Assembly (NCBI GenBank): GCA_038087875.1
Contig: JAXLNO010005446.1
Coordinates: 1-64,000, forward strand
DNA: 64,000 nucleotides
Source of the DNA: Malacoraja senta
Lineage: Eukaryota
Direction of reading: 5' to 3'
This document shows positions 161 to 36,729 of the stretch, piece by piece. Within the stretch, counting starts at the first letter, position 1; every line of letters starts with the position of its first letter. The notes beneath the pieces are model-generated. The model was given only the letters and a program-made list of their open reading frames with translations, was not told the DNA's origin and searched no databases. The translations under genes and the position numbers were made by a program.

Positions 161-960
161 TTCAGCAATGCGACGGGTGTGATTGTAGAAGCTGTTCCTC
201 ATCCTACTGGTACGAGACCTGAGGCTCCTGTACCGCCTCCCTGATGGGAAGGAGGGCAAACAGTCCATGGTTGGGGTGGGAGGGGTCTTTAATGATCTTC
301 CCAGCCCGTTTCAGACACCGTTTTCGGTGGAGGGCATCCATGGCAGGGAGCGGGGGCACCGATGATGTGCTGCGCGGTCTTCACCACCCGTTGTAGTGCC
401 TTCCTGTCCGCAACAGTGCAGCTGCTGTACCATACCGTGAAGCAGGTGGTCAGGATACTCTCGATGGTACACCGGTAGAAGTTGGTCAGGATCCGGGGGG
501 ACAGGTGGGGTTTCTTGAGCCTCCTCAGAAGTAAAGGCGCTGCTGTGCCTTTTTGATCAGCTTGGAGGTGTTGAGGGACCAGGACAAATCCTCCGAGATG
601 TGACCCCGAGGAATTTGTAGCTGGAGACGCGCTCCACCTCAGTCCCGTTTATATGGATGGGGGTATGTCTGCCCCCACTGACCTTCCTGAAGTCGACAAT
701 AATTTCCTTCGTCTTCTTGGAGTTGAGGACTAGGTTATTGTTGGCACACCAGGTTGTCAGGTGCTGGACCTCCTCTCTGTAGGCTGACTCATCGTTGTCA
801 CTGATCAGTCCTACCACCGTGGTGTCGTCAGCAAATTTAATGATGGCGTTGGATCCGTACTTAGGGATGCAGTCGTGGGTGAAGAGGGAGTAGAGGAGAG
901 GGCTGAGCACACAGCCTGTGGCACGCCGGTGTTCAGTGTTATAGTGGAGGAGGTGAGGTT
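161..960 (-). mobile_element. Rex1/Babar-like LINE, 3' part of reverse transcriptase (degenerate)
   Basis: ORF 557-910(-) LSPLLYSLFTHDC...IIKFADDTTVVGLISDNDESAYREEV...KTKEIIVDFRK, plus C-terminal PSGRRYRS...RNSFY near 190-250. Confidence 0.85.
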
Positions 961-1371: not shown

Positions 1372-1540
1372 CGCTCGGCCAATCAGCGACCACCCGGGGG
1401 GCTGTTGCTGGGTGAAAAAGCCCCCCCGCTCGGCCAATCAGCGACCCCAGGGGACAGTTAAAGCCCGCGCTCGGCCAATCAGCGACCACCCGGGGGCTGT
1501 TGCTGGGTGAAAAAGCCCCCCGCTCGGCCAATCAGCGGCC
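1372..1540. promoter_or_regulatory. Tandem promoter array: four CCAAT/Y boxes and two X1(RFX)-like boxes just upstream of the WB-1 start codon
   Basis: CTCGGCCAATCAGCG with CCAAT at 1379, 1434, 1475 and 1528; CTGTTGCTGGG (reverse complement CCCAGCAACAG) at 1402-1412 and 1497-1507; ATG at 1563. Confidence 0.65.
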
Positions 1541-1562: not shown

Positions 1563-1662
1563 ATGAGGGGCAATGGACGGCGGGGGAATGGCGTCGCTGC
1601 TGGAGCTGCAGCCGCCCTCTCGCTGCTCTTCAACTTCTTCATGCTCGACGCCGCGGCTCTGG
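1563..1662 (+). CDS. WB: WB-1 (MHC W-category beta chain) exon 1, signal peptide
   Basis: MRGNGRRGNGVAAGAAAALSLLFNFFMLDAAAL; A at -3 of the ATG; phase-1 donor G|GTGAGG at 1662/1663. Confidence 0.75.
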
Positions 1663-1679
1663 GTGAGGAGGCTTGGCGG

Positions 1680-4448
1680 GCGGGCGTGGGGAGGGAGGGA
1701 GGGAGGGAGGGAAGATGCGGGACGGTGGAGGTTGAGGGGGTGGAGGGAGAGGAAGGTTGAGGGGGATTAGAGGGGCGAGGGAGTGGAGGGAGGAGGGAGA
1801 GGGTTGAGAAAAAGGAGGGTTGAGGAGGTGAATGGTTGAGGGAAAGGAGGGTGGAGGGAGATGAGGGTCGAGGGAGGAGGGGGTTGAGGGAGAAGGGGGT
1901 GGAGGGGTAAGAGGGGTTGAGGGAGGAGGGGGAAGAGGGGTGGAGGGAGAGGTTGAGGGGGTGAATGGTTGAGGGAGAGGAGGGTGGAGGGAGATGAGGG
2001 TGGAGGGAGATGAGAGTGGTGGAAGATGAGGGTTGAGGGAGGAGGGGGTGGAGGGGTAAGAGGGGTTGAGGGAGGAGGGGGAAGAGGGGTGGAGGGAGAG
2101 GAGGGTTGAGGGAGAGGAGGGTGGAGGGAGATGAGGGTGGAGGGAGATGAGGGTGGAGGGAGATGAGAGTGGTGGAAGATGAGGGTTGAGGGAGATGAGG
2201 GTGGAGGGAGAAGAGGGGGTGGAAGGTTGAGGGAGATGGGGGTGTGGAAGAGGAGGTGGAGGGAGATGAGGGTGGAGGGAGATGAGGGTGGAGGAGATGA
2301 GGGTGGAGGGAGATGAGGGTGGAGGGAGATGAGGTGGAGGGAGAAGAGGGGTTGAGGGGGTGGAAGGTTGAGGGAGATGGGGGTGGAGGGAGATGAGGGT
2401 GGAGGGAGATGAGAGTGGTGGAAGATGAGGGTTGAGGGAGGAGGGGGTGGAGGGAGATGAGGGTTGAGGGAGAAGGGGGAAGAGGGGTTGAGGGAGAAGG
2501 GGGTGGAGGGAGAGGAGGGTTGAGGGAGAGGAGGGTGGAGGGAGATGAGGGTGGAGGGAGATGAGGGTGGAGGGAGATGAGGGTGGAGGGAGATGAGGGT
2601 GGAGGGAGATGAGGGTGGAGGGAGAAGAGGGGGTGGAAGGTTGAGGGAGATGGGGGTGTGGGAAGAGGAGGTGGAGGGAGGAGAGAGTTGAGGGAGAGGA
2701 GGTGGAGAGTTAAGGGAGGAGAGGATGGAGGGAGATGAGGGTGGAGGGAGGAGAGAGTTGAGGGAGAGGAGGTGGAGGGGGGTGGAGAGTTAAGGGAGGA
2801 GAGGGTGGAGGGAGAGGAGGGTTGAGGGAGAAGAGGGTGGAGGGAGATGAGGGTTGAGGAGAAGAGGGTGGAGGGAGATGAGGGTTGAGGGAGAAGGGGG
2901 TGGAGGGAGATGAGGGTTGAGGGAGAAGGGGGTGGAGGGGAAGAGGGGTTGAGGGGGTGGAAGGTTGAGGGAGATGGGGGTGGGGGGAGAGGAGGTGGAG
3001 GGAGGAGAGAGTTGAGGGAGAAGAGGGTTGAGGGGTTGAATGGTTGAGGGAGAGGAGGGTTGAGGGAGAAGAGGGTGGAGGGAGATGAGGGTTGAGGGGG
3101 ATTAGGGTTGAGGGAGAATGGTTGAGGGGGGTGGAAGGTTGAGGGAGATGGGGGTGGGGGGGAGAGGAGGTGGAGGGAGGAGAGAGTGAGGGAGAAGAGA
3201 GTGTGAGGGGGTGGAGAGTTAAGGGAGGAGAGGGTTGAGGGAGAGGAGGTGGAGGGAGAAGAGGGTCAGAGTGTGGAGGGTGGGGGGAGAGGAGGGTTTA
3301 AGGGAGGAGAGGGTGGAGGGAGAAGAGGGTTGAGGGGGTGAATGGTTGAGGGAGAGGAGGGTGAGGGAGAGGAGGGTTGAGGGAGAGGAGGGTGGAGGGA
3401 GAAAGGTGGAGGGAGAAGAGGGTGGAGGGGGATTATGGTGGAGGGGAGGGATGAGAAAGAGGATGGGGAAGAGGGTGGAGGGATGAGGGGGTGGAGGGAG
3501 AGGACGATGGAGGGTTGAGTGGGTGGAGGGATGAGGGCGAGGAGGGTGAGGGAGAGGAGGGTTGGGAGAAGAGGGTTGAGGGAGAAGAGGGTTGAGGACG
3601 GTTGAGGGAGTGGAGGGAGAAGAGGGTTGTGGGAGAAGAGGGTGGAGGGAGAGGAGTTGGAGAGAGGGAGATGAGGGTGGAGGGAGAAGGGGGTGGAGGG
3701 AGAGGAGTTTGAGGGAGAAGGGGGTGTGAGGAGGAGAGGGGGTTGAGGGGGTGGGAGGTTGGGAGAGGGGTGGAGGAGTGGAGGGGGAGGAAGAGGGGAG
3801 GAGAGGGTTGAGGGAGAAGGGGTGGAGGGAGAGGAGGGTTGAGGAGGTGAGGGTGAGGGAGGTGGAGGTGAGGGAGAGGGTTGAGGTAGGTTGAGGAGAG
3901 GGTTGAGGGAGAAGGTGAGGTAGATGAGGAGGGTGAGGGAGGGGGTTGAGGGGGGTTTAGGGTGAGGGGATTGATGGGAGAAGAGGGTGGAGGGTGAGGA
4001 GGGTTGAGGGAGAGGACAATGGAGGGTTGAGTGGGTGGAGGGATGAGGTGCGAGGAGGGGGATTGGGTTGAGGGAGCGGAAGGTTGAGGAGAGGAGAGGT
4101 TGGAGGAGGTGGAGGGTGAGAGAGGATGTGGGGTGAGGAGGGTTGAAGAATGATGTTGTGGGGTGGAGGGTGAAGAAGTGTATGGGGTGAGAGGGTGAAG
4201 GGGGTAGGGAGATGAAGAGGGTGGCAGCTGGAGGTTTGAGAGGGCGTGAGGTTGAAAATAATGGGGTGAAGGGGGTTGGGATGAAGGGGTGGGGCTGGAA
4301 GATGAGGGAGGGGGTGAAGAGGCTGTTGGTGGAGGGTGAGTAGGTGATGTGGAGGATGAGGGGGTGAATAGAGTGGATGGGGGGTTGAACAGGGGTAAAG
4401 AAATTGAAGAGGAAGGGGAGGGTGAGGCTGAATAGGGTAGGGTGGAGG
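1680..4448 (+). repeat. About 2.8-kb G/A-rich low-complexity, minisatellite-like tract in WB-1 intron 1
   Basis: Degenerate GAGGGTGGAGGGAGAT-type units; almost no C on the + strand. Confidence 0.95.
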
Positions 4449-4966
4449 TAAGGAGTGCAGAGGACGTCACGGTGGCGCAGCGGTAGAGTTGAATGAATGA
4501 ATGAATGAATAAGTTTAGCCAAGTGTTCACATACAAGGAATTTGCCTTGGTGCTCTGCCCGCAAGTGACAACATGACCTACAGTGACAGTTAAGAATGAT
4601 ACATGAACCATTAAACATCAATAATAAAACATTATTGATTAAACATGTGAATTCAATGAAATATCAGAGCAAAAGGGTTGCTGCCTTACAGCAAATGCAG
4701 CGCCAGAGACCCGGGTTCCATCCCGACTATGGGTGCAGTCTGTACAGAGTTTGTACTTCTCCCCGTGACTTTTCACCGAGATCTTCGGTTTCCTCCCACA
4801 CCCCATAGATGTACAGGGTTTGTTACGTTAATTGGCTTGGTAAATGTAAAAAATTTACTCTGGTGTGTGTAGGATGGTGTTAATGTGCGGGGATCGCTGG
4901 TCGGCGCAGACCCGGTGGGCCGAAGGGCCTGTTTCCGCGCTGTATCTCTAAACTAAACTAAACTAA
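4449..4966 (+). mobile_element. tRNA-derived V-SINE (HE1-like) interrupted by an inverted LINE 3' tail (about 4480-4676)
   Basis: Box A GTGGCGCAGCGGTAGAGTTG at about 4451-4470, continuing GTTGCTGCCTTACAG at 4677; V-domain GAGTTTGTAC.TTCTCCCCGTGAC; the insert begins with (TGAA)n and recurs at about 33545-33740. Confidence 0.8.
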
Positions 4967-5494
4967 ATGACAGTGGAACAGGGGGGAGAGTAGCACATCG
5001 TCTGGGTTTGACGGTACTGTGCCTGTACTTACTAGAGTTTAGGAGGGGAGCTTCACTGAAGCTTATGGAATAGTGAAAGGCCTGGAAAAGCAGATGTGGG
5101 GAAGATGTTTCCAATACTGGAAGAGTCTAAGACCAGTGGGCACAGCCTCAGAAAGGAATTTCTTTAGCCAGATGGTGGTGAATCTGTGGAATTCATTGCC
5201 ATAGAAAAGTGTGGAGGTCAAGTCATTGGGTATTTTTAGGCAGAGATTGACAGGTTCTTGATTAGCACGGGTGTTATGGGGTTATGGGGGTTACGGGGCG
5301 AAGGCAGGGAATGGGATTGAGAGGGAGAGATATATCAGCCAGGATTGAATGGTGGAGTAGACCTGATGGACTGAGTGGCTTAATTTTGCTCCTTATGGGT
5401 GGGTGAAGAGGGTGAGGGGTGGTGTGTGGGAGTGAAGGCTGGAGAGCAGTGGATAAAGAAAGCATCTTGTCTGGTAACATCACGATCTGACAAT

Positions 5495-5985
5495 AGGACA
5501 ATAGATGCAGGAGTAGGCCATTCGGCCCTTCGAGCCAGCACCGCCATTCAATGTGATCATGGCTGATCATCCCCAATCAGTACCCCGTTCCTGCCTTCTC
5601 TGCATATCCTATCTTTAAGAGCCCGATCCAGCTCTCTCTTGAAAGTATCCATAGAACCGGCCTCCACCGCCCTCTGAGGCAGAGAATTCCACAGACTCAC
5701 CACTCTCTGTGAGAAAAAGTGTCTCCTCGTCTCCATTCTAAATGGCTTGCTCCTTATTCTTAAACTGTGTGTGGCCCCTGGTTCTGGACTTCCCCAACAT
5801 CGGGAACATGTTTCCTGCCTCTAGCGTGTCCAAGCCCTTAACAATCTTATATGTTTCAATCAGATTCCCTCTCATCCTTCTAAACTCCAGAGTGTAGAAG
5901 CCCAGCTGCTCCATTCTCTCAGCATATGACAGTCCCGCCATCCCGGGAATTAACCGTGTAAACCTACGCTGCACTCCCTCAATAA
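5495..5985 (-). mobile_element. CR1/HER1-like LINE, 3' fragment
   Basis: ORF 5738-5974(-) [24 protein letters not shown]...GNMFPMLGKSRTRGH, with the common 3' UTR and GACAATA tail. Confidence 0.9.
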
Positions 5986-6119
5986 TCTATCTAAGGTGGG
6001 GGATGAAGATGGCAGCAGGTAAGGGGAGGAAGAGGGTAGGGTGAAGAGGGCATGTGGTGAATGGGTGTCTTTCACCCCTTGCGGTGCGTAACATCGATTA
6101 TTAATTTTCCGCTCACCAG

Positions 6120-6377
6120 GGATGCACGTGGGCCAAATGAGCTTTTCTTGCGCTGGCGAAGATTTCTCCCTGATGGTCCTGCGATTTGCATTCGACGGCA
6201 AAGAGTTCATCCGCTTCGAATACTCCTCGAACAAGTTTGTAGCCAAACACCCCCTGGCGGAGCCATACGCCGAGGGGCTGAACAAAAATGCAAGAGTTAT
6301 CAAAAATGTTGCCCGCTACATTCGTCGCGTGCCGTTGATCTCGCGCATAGTTAAAGAAGGCATCCGAGCTGAGACGG
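6120..6377 (+). CDS. WB: WB-1 exon 2, membrane-distal beta1 domain (class I alpha2-like)
   Basis: Acceptor ttttccgctcaccAG|; GMHVGQMSFSC...FAFDGKEFIRF...GIRAET aligns with class I alpha2 G91/H93/Q96/C101/A117/D119/G120; donor G|GTAAGG; 258 nt, phase 1-1. Confidence 0.9.
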
Positions 6378-6499
6378 GTAAGGTTTTGCATGGCTTCACA
6401 TCACGCTGAAGGTGGCGGAAATGTTGGAGGGCAACGTGTTCGGTACGGAGGCTGACGGAGATGATGACTTGAGTCTCTGCAAGAGGCAGGGCGGGAGGA

Positions 6500-7075
6500 G
6501 TAGTCCATTCTAGGACATCCGAGATGTCCTCTCAAGTGATATCTGGACTAAACCTACTCCCATCCAGCTTCTTGCAAAGACGCTATCTCTTAAAGGCCTG
6601 TCTCACGAGTCTGCGGTCATTGGCGGCGAAACGGGAAGAATCTGCCGCCATAGACCGCGCACTCGTGAGAACGTACAATTCCGGTGCCGTGCGGCGGTGT
6701 TCCCAACACCGCACGGTGCTAAAATAAAACCGACAATGTTGAAAACTATAATCTTACCGCACAACCTCCGCCAGTGAGGCACGTGCGCGGCACGGCCACA
6801 GGCACAGCCACCGCTACAGCGCCGCGATCAGGACGGCCGCCGCCACAGCCGCCGCTCGTGAGTCACGTGTGGCGGGCCGACGTCATCGCAGTCGGCCCGC
6901 CCTTTTTTTTTACTTACCGCAAGCACGTGGGACCCGCCGTGTTTGAATTAACTCGGTCCCCGCGCAGCATCCGTGCGGCGCTCCAGTGGATAGGCTCGGC
7001 GCTCTCGTCGTTGCCGTGCGGTCCCCGCTACCGGCGACGCCGCGCTTCACCGCCGATGACCGCAAACAGGTAAGA
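6500..7075. promoter_or_regulatory. CpG-rich promoter-like island in WB-1 intron 2 with splice signals on both strands
   Basis: High CpG content; three CACGTG; TGAGTCA; GACGTCA; + donor CAG|GTAAGA at 7069/7070; - strand donor CG|GTAAGT at 6918/6917 and - strand acceptor ttttattttAG at 6719. Confidence 0.35.
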
Positions 7076-7559
7076 CAGAGAGCCTTTACTCTCAGCTTCA
7101 CCGTCTCCCAGGATGAAGCCTGACTACGGGTGCATGTCTGTATAGAGTTCGCAACGTTCTCCCCATGACCTGCTTGGGATTTCTCCGAGATCTTCGGTTT
7201 CCTCCTACACTCCAAAGACAAGCAAAGGCTAATTGGCTTGGTGTAAATGTAAAACATTGTTCCAAGTGTGTGTAGGGTCAGTCAGTCAGTCAATCTTATT
7301 TGTATAGCACATTTAAAACAACTCACGTTGACCAAAGTGCTGTACACCAGTGTAGGTATTGGTGTTATCTACAGACCCCCAAATAATAGACGCAGGATCA
7401 TTTCATTCCAAAAAGGAAGAAAGATTCTAAGGGGAGTAGGAGGCAACTGTGGCTGACAAGAGAAGTTAGGGATAGAATAAAACTAAAAGAAAAGATGTAT
7501 AACACAGCAAAGAGTAGCCAGAAGCCAGAGGATTGGGAAACTTTCATAGAACAACAGAT

Positions 7560-8480
7560 CTATTTAACCTTATCCGCTGCCTCGAGGATATAAAGTGTTG
7601 GATGGCCCAGAAGTTCCTCCAACTAAACGAGAGTAAGTCTGAGGTCATCCTTCTCGGCCCCTCGGACTCAATCAAAATGATAGCAGGCAGCTTTGGAAGC
7701 CTTACCCCATTACTCAAACCTCACGTCAAAAACCTTGCCGTGATATTTGACTCAGCATTGAAATTTGACAAACAAGTCAATGCCGTGGGTAAAAGCTAGC
7801 TTCTTCCAGCTTCGGACGATAACTAAAATAAAACAATTCCTCCAGTTTGATGACCTCGAAAAGATCATCCACACATTTATCTCCTCCCGCCTAGATTACT
7901 GCAACTCCCTCTACACTGGCATCAGCCAATCTTCCCTGTCCCGCGTGCAACTGGTCCAAAACGCCGCAGCGAGACTCCTGACGGGCACCCGAAAAGGGAC
8001 CACATCACCCCGATCCTGGCCTCTCTCCACTGGCTCCCTGTGCGATTCCGAATAATGTCAAGATCCTCCTTTATGTCTACAAAGCCCTCAACGGGCTTTC
8101 CCCCACCTACATCAAAAGTCTTCTCACCCACCACTCCACCTCCAGGTCCCTCAGATCGGCCGACTTGGGGTTGCTGAATATCCCCGCGGTCTAGGCATAA
8201 GCTCAGGGGCGACCGGGCCTTTGTGGTTGCAGCTCCTAGACTGTGGAACAGCATCCCTCTTCCCATCAGAACTGCCCCCTCCATCGACTCCTTTAAGTCG
8301 AGACTTAAAACTCATCTTTACTCCCAAGCCTTTCTTGACGTCCTCTGAGTGAGGGCTACATGTATGTATTTATGTATGTACTTAATCTATGAACCACTGT
8401 TGTATAACATTAGTACCTCCACCAATGTAAAGCACTTTGGTCAACGAGAGTTGTTTTTTAAATGTGATATAGAAATAAAA
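7560..8480 (+). mobile_element. L2-clade LINE, 3' fragment
   Basis: [22 protein letters not shown]...SSRLDYCNSLYTG...LVQNAAARLLTG; near-identical copy at 59515-60265. Confidence 0.88.
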
Positions 8481-8676
8481 GTGACTTTTATTTAGGAAAC
8501 AAAACGGGCCAATACTAGTGTTAATGTGTGGGGAACGCTGGTCGGAACGTACTCGGTGGGCCGAAGGGCCTGTATCACTAAACTAAACCAATTTTCATAC
8601 CTTAAATCATGTTGGCATTGCTTTTCCTGACACGTCGAGCACGTTTACACTCTGTGTCTTTTCCCGTCCACTTCAG

Positions 8677-8961
8677 CGAAGCCAGCGATCACGATAAACT
8701 CAAGGCGTCCAAATGCACACGGACATCCCTTGGTCCTGACCTGCAGAGTGGATGGATTTTACCCGAGGGACATCAATGCCACCTGGCTGCGGAACGGCAA
8801 AGACATCGACCAAGAGGTGCTAAGGAGCAACATTTTGGCCAACTTTGACGGGACGTTCCAGATGCGGCTACAGCTTAGTGTTGACCCCAGCAGAATAGGT
8901 GACACCTATTCCTGCCAAATCACACACAGAAGCGTGACTGACAACCTGACTGCAGTTTGGG
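8677..8961 (+). CDS. WB: WB-1 exon 3, Ig-C1 beta2 domain (class I alpha3-like)
   Basis: Acceptor cttcAG|; AKPAITI...LVLTCRVDGFYPRDINATWLRNG...NFDGTFQMR...YSCQITHRS...AVW; donor G|GTAAGG; 285 nt, phase 1-1. Confidence 0.92.
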
Positions 8962-9326
8962 GTAAGGATCAGAATCGGGACTTCTGCGGCTGATCGGCGG
9001 GTCGAGTTTCCCCCCCCCCCCCACTCCTCTCCTTCCGGGACTCTGGAATTCCGGCCTGGCCAGAAACAACAGATCCATTCCCATCACCGTTCTTCCATGG
9101 CGGACTTTGCAGGCCGGAATCTCAGGGAGGGGGGGGGGGGCCTAACCAAAGTCATATACAGTTGCGAATATAGACACAAAATGCTGGAGTAACTCAGCGC
9201 GACAGGCAGCATCTCTGGAGAGAAGGAATGGGTGACGTTTTGGGTCGAGACCCTTCTCCCACAATATTCCTTCTGATAAAGTTGGGTTTACTGTAACATC
9301 TTCTGACTCTAGCTCTTTTTCTCCAG

Positions 9327-9431
9327 TTCCCCAGAAACAAAACGTACCAGTCTATGGATATGTGGTTGGAATAATGGCTGGATTAGTCGGTATTCTGATT
9401 GCTGTATCTGGAGGAGTCATGAAATGGAAAG
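9327..9431 (+). CDS. WB: WB-1 exon 4, connecting peptide and transmembrane helix
   Basis: Acceptor ctttttctccAG|; VPQKQNVPVYGYVVGIMAGLVGILIAVSGGVMKWK; donor G|GTAGGA; 105 nt. Confidence 0.88.
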
Positions 9432-9614
9432 GTAGGAACATTTTTGCATGTCCTCGTCAGTCTAGGAAAAGTTTTCCTTTATAATCTTGTCTCAGTCCCT
9501 TGCTAATGCCACAATTTGCATGGATGCAAGTATACTGTTGTTCACCACCATTTATGTGGTGACTCTTTGCATACCTTAGGAAAAAGGTTCTGACTATCTA
9601 CCCTATCTATTGTT

Positions 9615-10070
9615 TAAGAAGTCACTGCAGATGCACCCATCTCCTCCGCTTTCGGCTTTCCGCAGAGACCGCTCCCTCCGTAACTCCCTTGGTCCATTCG
9701 TCCCTTCCCACCCGAACCACACCCTCCCCTGGTACTTTCCCTTGCAACCGCAGGAAATGCTACACTTGTCGCTTTAACCTCCCCCCTTGACTCCATCCAA
9801 GGACCCAAGCAGTCTTTCCAGGTGCGGCAGAGGTTCGCCTGCACCTCCTCCAACCTCAGCTATTGCATCCGCTTCTCTATGTGTCAGCTGCTGTACATCG
9901 GTGAGACCAAGTGCAGGCTCGGCGATCGCTTCGCCCCAACACCTCCGCTCAGTTCGCAATAACCAACCTGATCTCCCGGTGGCTCAGCACTTCAACTCCC
10001 CCTCCTATTCCCAATCCGACCTTTCTGTCCTGGGCCTCCTCCATGGCCAGAGTGAGTCTCGTTGCACTTC
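9615..10070 (+). mobile_element. Penelope-like element fragment (GIY-YIG endonuclease region)
   Basis: LYIGETKCRLGDRFA...HLRSVRNNQPDLPVAQHFNSPS. Confidence 0.85.
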
Positions 10071-10158
10071 TCCTTTTCCTAACCTGACACCATTCATATA
10101 ATAATCTGCCTTCTTGTTCTTGCCACCAAAGTGGAAACATTTGATTATCTTTCTGCAG

Positions 10159-10175
10159 GTGAACCAGAACCGTGA
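10159..10175 (+). CDS. WB: WB-1 candidate terminal coding exon (GEPEP*); 3' structure uncertain
   Basis: Acceptor attatctttctgcAG| at 10158; phase-1 entry gives G-E-P-E-P-TGA; alternative endings exist (see findings). Confidence 0.4.
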
Positions 10176-10269
10176 CTCACAATGTGCGCCGAACCACAGT
10201 CAACCCATTACCCTTCCAGATGTGTTGGCCGCTGATATGTCTTCAGGTAAACCACCTCCTCAGCAAACG

Positions 10270-11040
10270 CAAATAGCTAGACTATTATCCGAATGGTGGC
10301 CGATTAGGAAAAGGGGAGATGCAACGAGACCTGGGTGTCATGGTACACCAGTCATTGAAAGTAGGCATGCAGGTGCAGCAGGCAGTGAAGAAAGCGAATG
10401 GTATGTTAGCATTCATAGCAAAAGGATTTGAGTATAGGAGCAGGGAGGTTCTACTGCAGTCGTACAGGGCCTTGGTGAGACCACACCTGGAGTATTGCGT
10501 ACAGTTTTGGTCTCCAAATCTGAGGAAGGACATTCTTGCCATAGAGGGAGTACAGAGAAGGTTCACCAGACTGATTCCTGGGGTGGCAGGACTTTCATAT
10601 GAAGAAAGACTGGATAGACTTGGCTTGTACTTGCTAGAATTTAGAAGATTGAGGGGGGACCTTATAGAAACGTACAAAATTCTTAAGGGGTTGGACAGGC
10701 TAGATGCAGGAAGATTGTTCCCGATGTTTGGGGAAGTCCAGAACAAGGCGTCACAGTTAAGGATAAGGAGGAAGTCTTTTAGGACCGAGATGCGAAAATC
10801 ATTTTTTACACAGAGAATGGTGAATCTGTGGAACTCTCTGCCACAGGTAGTTGAGGCCAGCTCATTGGCTCTATTTAAGAGGGAGTTAGATGTGGCCCAT
10901 GTGGCTAAAGGGATCAGGGGGTCTGGAGAGAAGGCAGGTACGGGATACTGAGTTGGATGATCAGCCATGATCATATTGAATGGCGGTGCAGGCTCGAAGG
11001 GGCCGAATGGCCTACTCCTGCACCTATTGTCTATGTTTCT
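10270..11040 (+). mobile_element. CR1/HER1-like LINE, 3' RT and UTR
   Basis: ORF 10319-10951 QRDLGVMVHQSLK...[13 protein letters not shown]...LWNSLP. Confidence 0.92.
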
Positions 11041-13090: not shown

Positions 13091-13789
13091 CCATTAGGCC
13101 ATTCGGCTCATCAAGTCTACCCTGCCATTCAGTCACGGCTGATCTATCTTTCCATATCAACCCCAATTCTCCTGCCTTCTCCCCATAACCCCTGACACCC
13201 GTACAAATCAAGAATCTGTCAATCTCCGCCTTCAAAATACCCAATGACCCTCCCTCCACAGGACAAAGGATAAAGGCCATTTATTGTCACACACACCAAT
13301 TGGTGCAGTGAAATTTAAGTTAGCATGCAGCACACAAATAAGATCAAGGCAACACTATAGAATTGAACATAAAACACAGCCGTCTGTGGCAAAGAATTCC
13401 ACAGATTCGCCACCCTCTGACAAAAGAAATTCCTCCTCATCTTCGTTCTGAAAGTACGTCCCAAAGATAACGGATCATAAAAGTTAACCAGAGCGCACTT
13501 TACAGACAGGAATCTAGCAAACGGGGGGAGTCTGGGGAATGTAACGCTGAGGTTTACGCAGCTAATACTGGACTGTTGCCGCCTTGTATTTGTGGCTGCA
13601 TCATCCCAGGTCTCTTCCTTTACTTCCCAGATGTCAGTGCGCCACGTGAAGACACCCACCTTTGTGAAGACGTCACATCTTTGCCGAGCCCCGTCTCTTC
13701 AAATGTGTCGGAAGTTTAAAAACGTATCGCCCATTTGTACGCCAAATAAAATCCAGCGACCAGCCTCTCGAAGACCTCGTGGGCGGAAA

Positions 13790-22534: not shown

Positions 22535-22816
22535 CAAGCGAGAGGGTCAGGGCTTCATCGAGGCTGACGTGAGCCACGAGGCAGCTGAAGGTGTCCCCGC
22601 GTTGGGGCTCGACCCGGATGTACTTCAGGATGTTGAAGGTCCAGTCTGTCTCGACCAGCAGTGCGGACGAGTGGACGGGGCCGGCGAAAGGTTGGCCGTT
22701 GACCAGGAACTGGAGCTCAATCTCGAAAGGGTAGAACCTCTCGGCAAAACAGTACAGGTTGATGGGTCTCTGTAGGGCGTGGTCCTCTTCCGTGTAGATG
22801 TGGACGATGGGTTTCT
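22535..22816 (-). CDS. WA: WA exon 3, Ig-C1 alpha2 domain (beta2-microglobulin-like)
   Basis: Acceptor cttgttgcAG|; KPIVHIYTEEDHALQRPINLYCFAERFYPFEIELQFLVNG...ALLVETDWTFNILKY...GDTFSCLVAHVSLDEALTLSL; donor G|GTAAGT; 282 nt, phase 1-1. Confidence 0.93.
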
Positions 22817-35386: not shown

Positions 35387-35656
35387 GCCTGCATGTGATG
35401 CACCAGTTATGTGGCTGCAGCCAGCGCGGTCGGCAAATGGTCGTGTCTTGGGTGGACGGCTACGACGGAGAAACCGTCCTGTACTACCAGCTGGGCAACA
35501 AGTCGTTCGTCGCCACCCGGCCTCACGCCCAGTCGCTGGTGAACGGCCGCAACGCCAACCTCCAGTTCGTGGAGGCCGTCCCCATACTGGTGTCCAACCT
35601 CTGCGACAAAATCAAACGCCTCGCTGCCCTCGTCAACGTCACCCAGGAAAGGAGAG
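35387..35656 (+). CDS. WB: WB-2 exon 2, membrane-distal beta1 domain (class I alpha2-like)
   Basis: Acceptor gtttcctccgcAG|; GLHVMHQLCGCSQRG...DGYDGETVLYY...VSNLCDKIKRLAALVNVTQERR, with a C101/C164-equivalent pair; donor G|GTCAGT; 270 nt. Confidence 0.92.
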
Positions 35657-36660: not shown

Positions 36661-36729
36661 ATGTTTCTCTGTGTTTCTCTAATCCAAGCTGCTTTCAACC
36701 TGTGCCTCGTTCCCCTGATGTTTGTGCAG

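Follow-up and report, generated by a model that had tools for sequence, protein, structure and literature searches.

WB-1 is a gene on the forward strand, near the left end of a 64,000-nucleotide stretch of Malacoraja senta DNA (contig JAXLNO010005446.1 of assembly GCA_038087875.1, positions 1 to 64,000; hereafter the window). It is very probably the skate orthologue of WB_DS1, a published beta chain of the W category of molecules of the major histocompatibility complex (MHC) (PMC8713811, cited throughout for the parts of its text, appendix and datasets that are available). WB_DS1 is one of three old elasmobranch W-category beta-chain lineages. WB-1 had been presented in the initial annotation as a new and divergent gene; its lineage is already known, and the locus is an added species record for it, not a discovery. 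For WB_DS1, family, cluster layout and alternative exon have all been published, and no new question is opened. What the locus supplies is a complete skate WB_DS1 gene, where the available parts of PMC8713811 had only a partial beta1 domain from the little skate. WB-1 is a real, intact gene and apparently a functional one.

In terms of sequence relatives, when 1.8 billion representative proteins were scanned in full by HMMER with the beta1 domain of WB-1, six matches only were returned, the best being a Mobula protein. The WB_DS1 family was gathered by word-based searches starting from the Mobula and great white shark matches. The spliced product is 85% identical to a skate transcript protein (P0026), 79% to the RefSeq proteins of Amblyraja radiata and Rhinoraja longicauda, 58% to Pristis, about 52% to Mobula and 45% to great white shark P0009 (XP_041035565.1). 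P0009, together with P0003, carries the sequence of the row “great white shark WB DS1L” in Dataset S1 of PMC8713811, and WB-1 is nearly matched by the partial rows that the datasets give for “little skate WB DS1 like”. Both the identities and the rows of Datasets S1 to S3 place it closer to published WB_DS1 than to WB_DS3 or WB_Nds5L. The beta1 helix carries the LN motif (G-L-N), a WB_DS1 trait, and the DS3-specific insertion, the extra DS3 cysteine and the C-x-C motif of WB_Nds5L are all missing. With WB-2, the other beta-chain gene of the window, identity is 23% in beta1 and 34% in beta2. The two had been thought to be old lineages, and they are: WB-1 and WB-2 correspond to the published WB_DS1 and WB_Nds5L, each present in sharks and skates.

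Some variation was found within the family. The P0003 model of Carcharodon carcharias, reported as an “uncharacterized protein”, has an unrelated Ser-rich N-terminus and a WB_DS1L beta1, followed by connecting peptide, transmembrane segment and tail without an immunoglobulin (Ig) domain; the likely explanation is mis-annotation of an isoform, or else a second locus. Several WB_DS1-type paralogues are present in mantas (P0001, P0014, P0017 and P0020 on one contig of Mobula hypostoma, P0015 in Mobula birostris), and in one manta sub-group six residues of the beta1 sheet are deleted.

As for the gene structure, an open frame of 278 codons runs over five exons (Table 1) separated by phase 1 introns, with canonical GT/AG sites throughout, and the main product has 278 residues. 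The architecture is of class II beta type, with a leader, one membrane-distal domain exon, one C1-set exon, a connecting peptide/transmembrane exon and cytoplasmic exons. Exon 2 matches the Pfam family MHC_II_beta above its curated cut-off (E 2.2e-5), with a weaker match to the MHC_I alpha2 domain (E 0.017), and exon 3 matches C1-set (E 3e-18). Among solved structures, chicken class II beta chains are the nearest in sequence, at E ~1e-4. Spliced transcripts are available from two other skates. In run X5, from a related skate, an 818-nt contig joins exons 2 to 4 without introns at 93-95% identity, and extends 169 nt upstream of beta1. The second transcript, L001 (SRR11241647), encodes P0026 and has the leader spliced straight to beta1; its species is distinct from that of X5, given the differences of the two relative to the window. 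The order of leader, beta1, beta2 and transmembrane segment, as first read from the sequence, is thus borne out by exon borders, Pfam and spliced orthologue transcripts. Furthermore, two DNA-like runs, probably of M. senta, carry positions 6000-6612 (with the beta1 exon) with 0 differences and contiguously through the introns, and one small run of the same study has no WB-1 exon matches.

The 3' end differs from the one first assigned. The stop after the GEPEP motif at 10175 belongs to the start of an optional exon, and the conserved stop is at 13719. The conserved skate tail was located by tblastn following a pyrimidine tract, and it matches the orthologous transcript L001, as does the 3' untranslated region (UTR). 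The last three residues of this tail are S-E-V in all of the four skates but Rhinoraja, whose model diverges; most ray sequences finish with T-E-A or S-E-A. In WB-1, this end, at 13705-13719, looks like a class I PDZ-binding motif. The optional exon has a sole AG acceptor (10157-58), with which it measures 88 nt, one base too long and therefore out of frame, and it meets a stop after GEPEP at 10173-75. Its in-frame reading (V-N-Q-N-R-D-S-Q...) corresponds by homology to an exon of Amblyraja isoform X2; Amblyraja isoform X3, P0026 and the short shark isoforms lack the exon. In houndshark, WB_DS1 cDNAs are described in which the penultimate connecting peptide/transmembrane/cytoplasmic exon is alternatively skipped (PMC8713811).

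The residues that mark the W category (numbering of PMC8713811) are mostly in place. In beta1, G-M-H-V-G-Q gives H3 and Q6 and A-F-D-G-K-E gives A32, G35 and K36, with Glu at position 37 in place of the W-category Asp. In beta2, the motif F-D-G-T-F-Q has Gly61 in place of the class II Trp61; W-category beta2 domains lack this Trp and mostly have Gly61 (PMC8713811). The contacts between domains would be of class I type, through H3, Q6, A32, G35, K36 and E37 of beta1 and Gly61 of beta2. The transmembrane pattern G-Y-V-x-G-I-x-x-G-x-x-G-I-x-I-A-x-x-G-G matches the WB_DS1 rows of Dataset S3. As modelled by AlphaFold2 with a 17-sequence alignment, the Amblyraja orthologue has four strands, then one short and one long helix, followed by the Ig domain. 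Residues 82-110 form one helix that runs through a Pro, and each of the top 50 structural matches in the PDB is a class II beta chain, DO beta among them.

In terms of cysteines, WB-1 beta1 was said to keep only the first of the canonical pair, and exon 2 confirms it: its one Cys lies in the motif SFSC (codon 6149-6151), and the helix has none. The classical class II beta chains of cartilaginous fish keep both, Cys15-Cys79 (PMC8010645), and WB-2 also retains both. The former partner site is occupied by Pro in an ungapped comparison with chicken class II, or by Ala four residues earlier when WB-2 is used. Alignment of orthologues from rays and sharks, the comparison suggested for this loss, shows that it is lineage-wide: in none of the 18 aligned WB_DS1-type sequences (window copy included) is the canonical helix position or its vicinity occupied by a Cys, apart from one Mobula paralogue with two vicinal Cys, one and two residues away from that position. 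Since the second Cys is gone throughout the aligned sequences, the loss of the disulfide is an old trait of the lineage. Some manta WB_DS1-type paralogues have adjacent helix Cys (V-T-C-C-V) and no Cys in the floor.

The first position is far more variable. It is Cys in the four skates (window copy, P0026, Amblyraja and Rhinoraja), in Heterodontus and, according to Dataset S1, in the zebra bullhead shark and the spiny dogfish. It is Gly in sawfish and in stingrays and mantas, Ile in lamniform sharks and Heptranchias, Phe in houndshark and blue shark, Tyr in catshark and Val in zebra shark. On the species tree, gains and losses of this Cys are equally parsimonious, and retention is favoured only because the position is that of the ancestral MHC Cys. 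On the simplest reading, the helix Cys would have been lost once, in the WB_DS1 stem before the split of sharks and batoids, and the orphan floor Cys would then have decayed independently in several orders, being kept in skates, bullhead shark and dogfish. A helix without the disulfide would be held by its hydrophobic face only. The available text and appendix of PMC8713811 contain no discussion of the missing WB_DS1 disulfide, only shading legends for conserved cysteines. Taken with public proteins of sharks and rays, WB-1 shows that a helix-to-floor disulfide that is almost universal in MHC folds has been dispensable in WB_DS1 since before sharks and rays separated, and this, along with the repeated loss of the orphan Cys, is a constraint for modelling or expressing WB_DS1 with its presumed alpha chain WA_DS10.

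The beta1 helix had been described as rich in Arg and Lys, and the counts agree, with 8 Lys/Arg and 1 Glu over a stretch of 25 residues and a pI of 9.7 for the whole of beta1. This basic character is not conserved. The net charge of the helix is +6 in the window, +4 in Amblyraja, 0 in Rhinoraja and -1 in the P0026 skate, and ranges from -3 to +3 in rays and from -1 to +3 in sharks, while the pI of beta1 goes from 5.0 to 9.8 across WB_DS1-type sequences. A helix core V-A-R-Y-x-R-R-x-P-L-I-S is common to three of the four skates, and the fourth has three Arg replaced. Of the eight basic residues, a helical wheel puts five opposite the hydrophobic, sheet-packing face, and so these may be solvent-exposed rather than groove-lining. 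The hydrophobic moment of the helix is unexceptional (593 of 5000 shuffles reach it), which leaves the “basic stripe” as an argument of geometry only.

The ratio of non-synonymous to synonymous rates (dN/dS), computed against the coding DNA of one orthologue (L001), is 0.98 in beta1 (helix portion 1.3, sheet portion 0.73), 0.33 in beta2 and 0.71 overall. The helix is fast-evolving, and its charged surface may be exposed to solvent; a groove wall conserved across the lineage it is not. A strongly basic helix surface is a feature of M. senta and of part of the skates, with beta2 apparently under purifying selection.

The WB-1 product is predicted to be a type I membrane protein with a signal peptide, a beta1 half-groove, a C1-set beta2 domain, a transmembrane helix and a short tail, and the alternative form with the optional penultimate exon would end prematurely in the M. 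senta genome. By homology, the chain would pair in the endoplasmic reticulum with a W-category alpha chain, which shark synteny suggests to be WA_DS10-like, and the pair, a heterodimer of class II shape, would move on to the cell surface. Heterodimer formation and arrival at the surface have been shown in transfected cells for the salamander WA/WB pair, the only W pair so shown (PMC8713811). The residues that hold peptide in the classical molecules of class I and class II are absent from WB-1, so that a nonclassical role is expected, be it with a non-peptide ligand, with no ligand or in contact with a receptor.

Several points weigh against reading WB-1 as a functional WB_DS1 chain. No M. senta RNA run with the WB-1 exons was found, the contigs at hand being DNA-like only. 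The beta1 ratio close to 1, which comes from small counts (20 non-synonymous and 6 synonymous differences), fits diversifying and relaxed selection alike. The optional exon is out of frame in the M. senta copy. The hallmark Pro57 of beta2, which contacts Tyr8 of the alpha2 domain (PMC8713811), is Ala in WB-1 alone (codon 8838-8840) and Pro in 17 of 17 aligned orthologues; a contig of run X20, probably M. senta, shows no difference from the window at this codon. Furthermore, the confidence of the Amblyraja model is moderate (mean pLDDT 64.5) and low in the first strand, and the alpha partner, the heterodimer, surface expression and the ligand are all inferred.

The first four of these points could also mean that the M. 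senta copy is drifting towards a pseudogene, its promoter and frame still intact and its constraint relaxed. We regard this as very unlikely. The 278-codon frame is open, all the GT/AG sites are present, and the poly(A) signal and the Y boxes of the promoter are conserved. Considering private changes among the four skates, the window copy has the second-fewest, 6 against 10, 11 and 26, and most of the beta1 change falls on the branch of the other skate, while the beta2 ratio remains low. Pro57 is the only otherwise-invariant site changed in the window copy, within the range of 0 to 4 such changes in other species, and in the alignment Ala57 is a single private substitution, not a feature of the lineage. 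As for the optional exon, the main isoform of the orthologues skips it.

The initial annotation went further and proposed that a basic groove wall or a free Cys could equip WB-1 for an acidic or non-peptide ligand, or for the formation of covalent dimers. The excess of basic residues in the helix and the high pI of beta1 point this way, as do the sole extracellular unpaired Cys, which is kept in the four aligned skates, Heterodontus and spiny dogfish, and the absence of classical peptide-holding residues. However, helix charge varies from -1 to +6 within four skates, one of which has replaced three Arg, and from -3 to +3 in rays and sharks, and most of the basic residues, lying opposite the hydrophobic face, may belong to the outer or top surface and not to the groove wall. 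Rays, sawfish and most sharks have another residue in place of the Cys, so the function of the WB_DS1 lineage does not need it, which argues against an essential covalent role; at its floor position, judging from the MHC fold, it would moreover be covered by the helix. With a charge that varies among skates and a Cys replaced in most lineages, these two traits lack support as marks of a special ligand or of dimerisation, and we give the proposal only a slim chance.

A combined reading of WB_DS1/WA_DS10 is just as much of a long shot. The helix, untethered for more than about 280 million years, would belong to a surface receptor that is ligand-free or senses small molecules, and its fast-changing, charge-flipping surface would contact a co-evolving receptor. 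The floor Cys retained in skates, bullhead sharks and dogfish would be a reactive thiol that captures ligand covalently. MR1 uses a lysine of its groove for covalent ligand capture.

Lastly, the reading of WB-1 as a class I-type gene with an alpha1 exon hidden in its 4.4-kb first intron has next to no chance: the class I alpha2-like residues (H3, Q6, AFDGKE), the weak Pfam MHC_I match and the Gly61 that beta2 shares with class I alpha3 could suggest it, but such residues are a published hallmark of W-category beta chains (PMC8713811), most of the intron is a minisatellite, L001 joins the leader directly to beta1, and the 169 nt ahead of beta1 in the X5 contig suffice for 5' UTR and leader and are too short for a further domain exon. 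A search for an alpha1 exon between 1663 and 6119, which would have made the gene class I, found none: class I and class II protein queries over the WB-1 introns and flanks gave noise (all E > 0.6) and matched the known exons. The class I reading is thereby refuted, by the leader-beta1 transcripts and by the empty intron search.

Upstream of WB-1, the CCAAT/Y-box sequence GGCCAATCAGCG is found in four copies against 0.26 expected, at a spacing of 41-55 bp and nowhere else in the window, and the proximal one is conserved in the 5' UTR of L001. Between the Y boxes are two X1-like boxes CTGTTGCTGGG, at 1402 and 1497 (reverse complement CCCAGCAACAG), and upstream of them are an octamer ATTTGCAT at 1193-1200 and a CRE-like TGACGT at 1210-1215. 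The repeated X1-like and Y boxes suggest a promoter of MHC type (RFX/NF-Y). Read on the minus strand, their order is X1 then Y, facing the presumed head-to-head partner.

Table 1. Exons and other features of the WB-1 locus, in window positions.
Feature	Position	Strand	Remarks
Promoter-proximal block	1377-1537	+	four exact CCAAT/Y-box copies of GGCCAATCAGCG, at 1377, 1432, 1473 and 1526
Exon 1: start codon and signal peptide	1563-1662	+	phase-1 donor GT at 1663; aligns with leaders of skate orthologues P0026 and P0027
G-rich minisatellite in intron 1	1720-4118	+	16/32-bp unit, about 75-135 copies, 2.4 kb, non-coding
Exon 2: beta1 membrane-distal domain	6120-6377	+	Pfam match; class I-type motif AFDGKE; X5 spliced contig 6119-6375
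Arg/Lys-rich part of beta1 helix	6284-6358	+	protein residues 89-113; without second Cys
Exon 3: beta2 C1-set Ig domain	8677-8961	+	Gly61 (W-category/class I type); X5 contig 8676-8960
Exon 4: connecting peptide and transmembrane helix	9327-9431	+	beta-chain glycine pattern; X5 contig 9326-9431
Optional penultimate cytoplasmic exon	10159-10246	+	homologous to exon in Amblyraja isoform X2 and long shark isoforms
Conserved last coding exon, cytoplasmic tail ending SEV	13631-13719	+	stop 13717-19; acceptor AG 13629-30; AATAAA 13745-13750

The minisatellite of intron 1, G-rich on the coding strand, gives a GC skew of 0.99 over 2001-4000 and yields long spurious Pro/Ser-rich open reading frames on the minus strand.

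As for the cluster, the window holds three C1-set exons only, those of WB-1, of a minus-strand WA gene (alpha2 near 22535-22816) and of WB-2 on the plus strand (beta1 near 35388, beta2 near 36700). These three account for the arrangement noticed at the outset, in which WB-1 lies tail-to-tail with WA and has no alpha partner in the window. The WA gene matches “little skate WA DS5 like”, and WB-2 has the C-x-C and transmembrane motifs of WB_Nds5L, both from the available datasets. Shark genes form the head-to-head pairs WA_Nds3L/WB_DS3L, WA_DS10L/WB_DS1L and WA_DS5L/WB_Nds5L (PMC8713811), and by this published order the window comprises the right half of the WA_DS10L/WB_DS1L pair and the whole WA_DS5L/WB_Nds5L pair. 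The cloudy catshark has a C1-set gene of 244 residues on the minus strand, whose end lies 273 bp upstream of WB_DS1L, head-to-head with it. Given this neighbour and the published pairs, a WA_DS10-like partner is likely to lie head-to-head with WB-1, to the left of position 1. Regarding the tandem array of WA/WB pairs that had been proposed, the array itself is the published shark arrangement, and a WA of its own for WB-1 is made likely by the catshark, at a place beyond the window. On the minus strand of 1-1562, no signal-peptide-like open reading frame was recognised as the leader exon of a WA partner; WB-1 starts 1.5 kb from the window edge, and these positions hold a reverse-transcriptase fragment and the promoter repeats.

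Two further observations concern the cluster. The P0024 model of Rhinoraja longicauda (isoform X2) runs, after its transmembrane exon, into a WB_Nds5L-like beta1 (G-L-H-V-M-H-Q-F-C-G-C...), and is a read-through or mis-joined model across the WA gene, which shows the same gene order in Rhinoraja. In addition, one family of retroelement reading frames recurs at 557-910 (-), at 10319-10951 (+) and in many copies between 21 and 34 kb; these are reverse-transcriptase and 3'-end pieces (motif ...ADDTT...) that fill the introns and intergenic DNA of the cluster.

Compared with classical class II beta chains (chicken BLB2, HLA-DR beta), WB-1 has the same domain order and fold. The classical chains have the beta1 disulfide and an invariant beta2 Trp61, whereas WB-1 has neither. 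In the ungapped alignment, the peptide-binding beta1 Trp61 of chicken BLB2 is Leu in WB-1, and by extending that alignment the equivalents of His81 and Asn82 would be Ile and Ser. The inter-domain residues are also of class I type, unlike those of classical class II beta.

WB_DS1 and WB_DS1L of sharks (banded houndshark, great white) share with WB-1 the exon plan, the LN motif, the transmembrane glycine pattern, the class I-type beta1 residues, beta2 Gly61, the lack of a second beta1 Cys, the optional penultimate cytoplasmic exon and a location next to the WA_DS5L/WB_Nds5L pair. In contrast, WB_DS1L of great white, houndshark and catshark has lost the first Cys too and has a less basic helix (+1 to +3), and shark WB_DS1L has Pro57 in beta2 where WB-1 has Ala.

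The WB_DS1-type sequences of skates are Amblyraja radiata isoforms P0025 and P0027, Rhinoraja longicauda P0024, and P0026 with its transcript L001. They are 79-85% identical to WB-1 and have, like it, a single Cys in S-C-A/T-G. The published little skate WB_DS1-like beta1 begins just past this Cys, and a full skate beta1 is absent from the available parts of PMC8713811. Finally, WB_Nds5L (WB-2) is likewise a W-category beta chain with a Pro57/Gly61-type beta2 and belongs to the same cluster. Unlike WB-1, it retains the two beta1 cysteines, has one more (C-x-C) and lies head-to-head with WA_DS5L.

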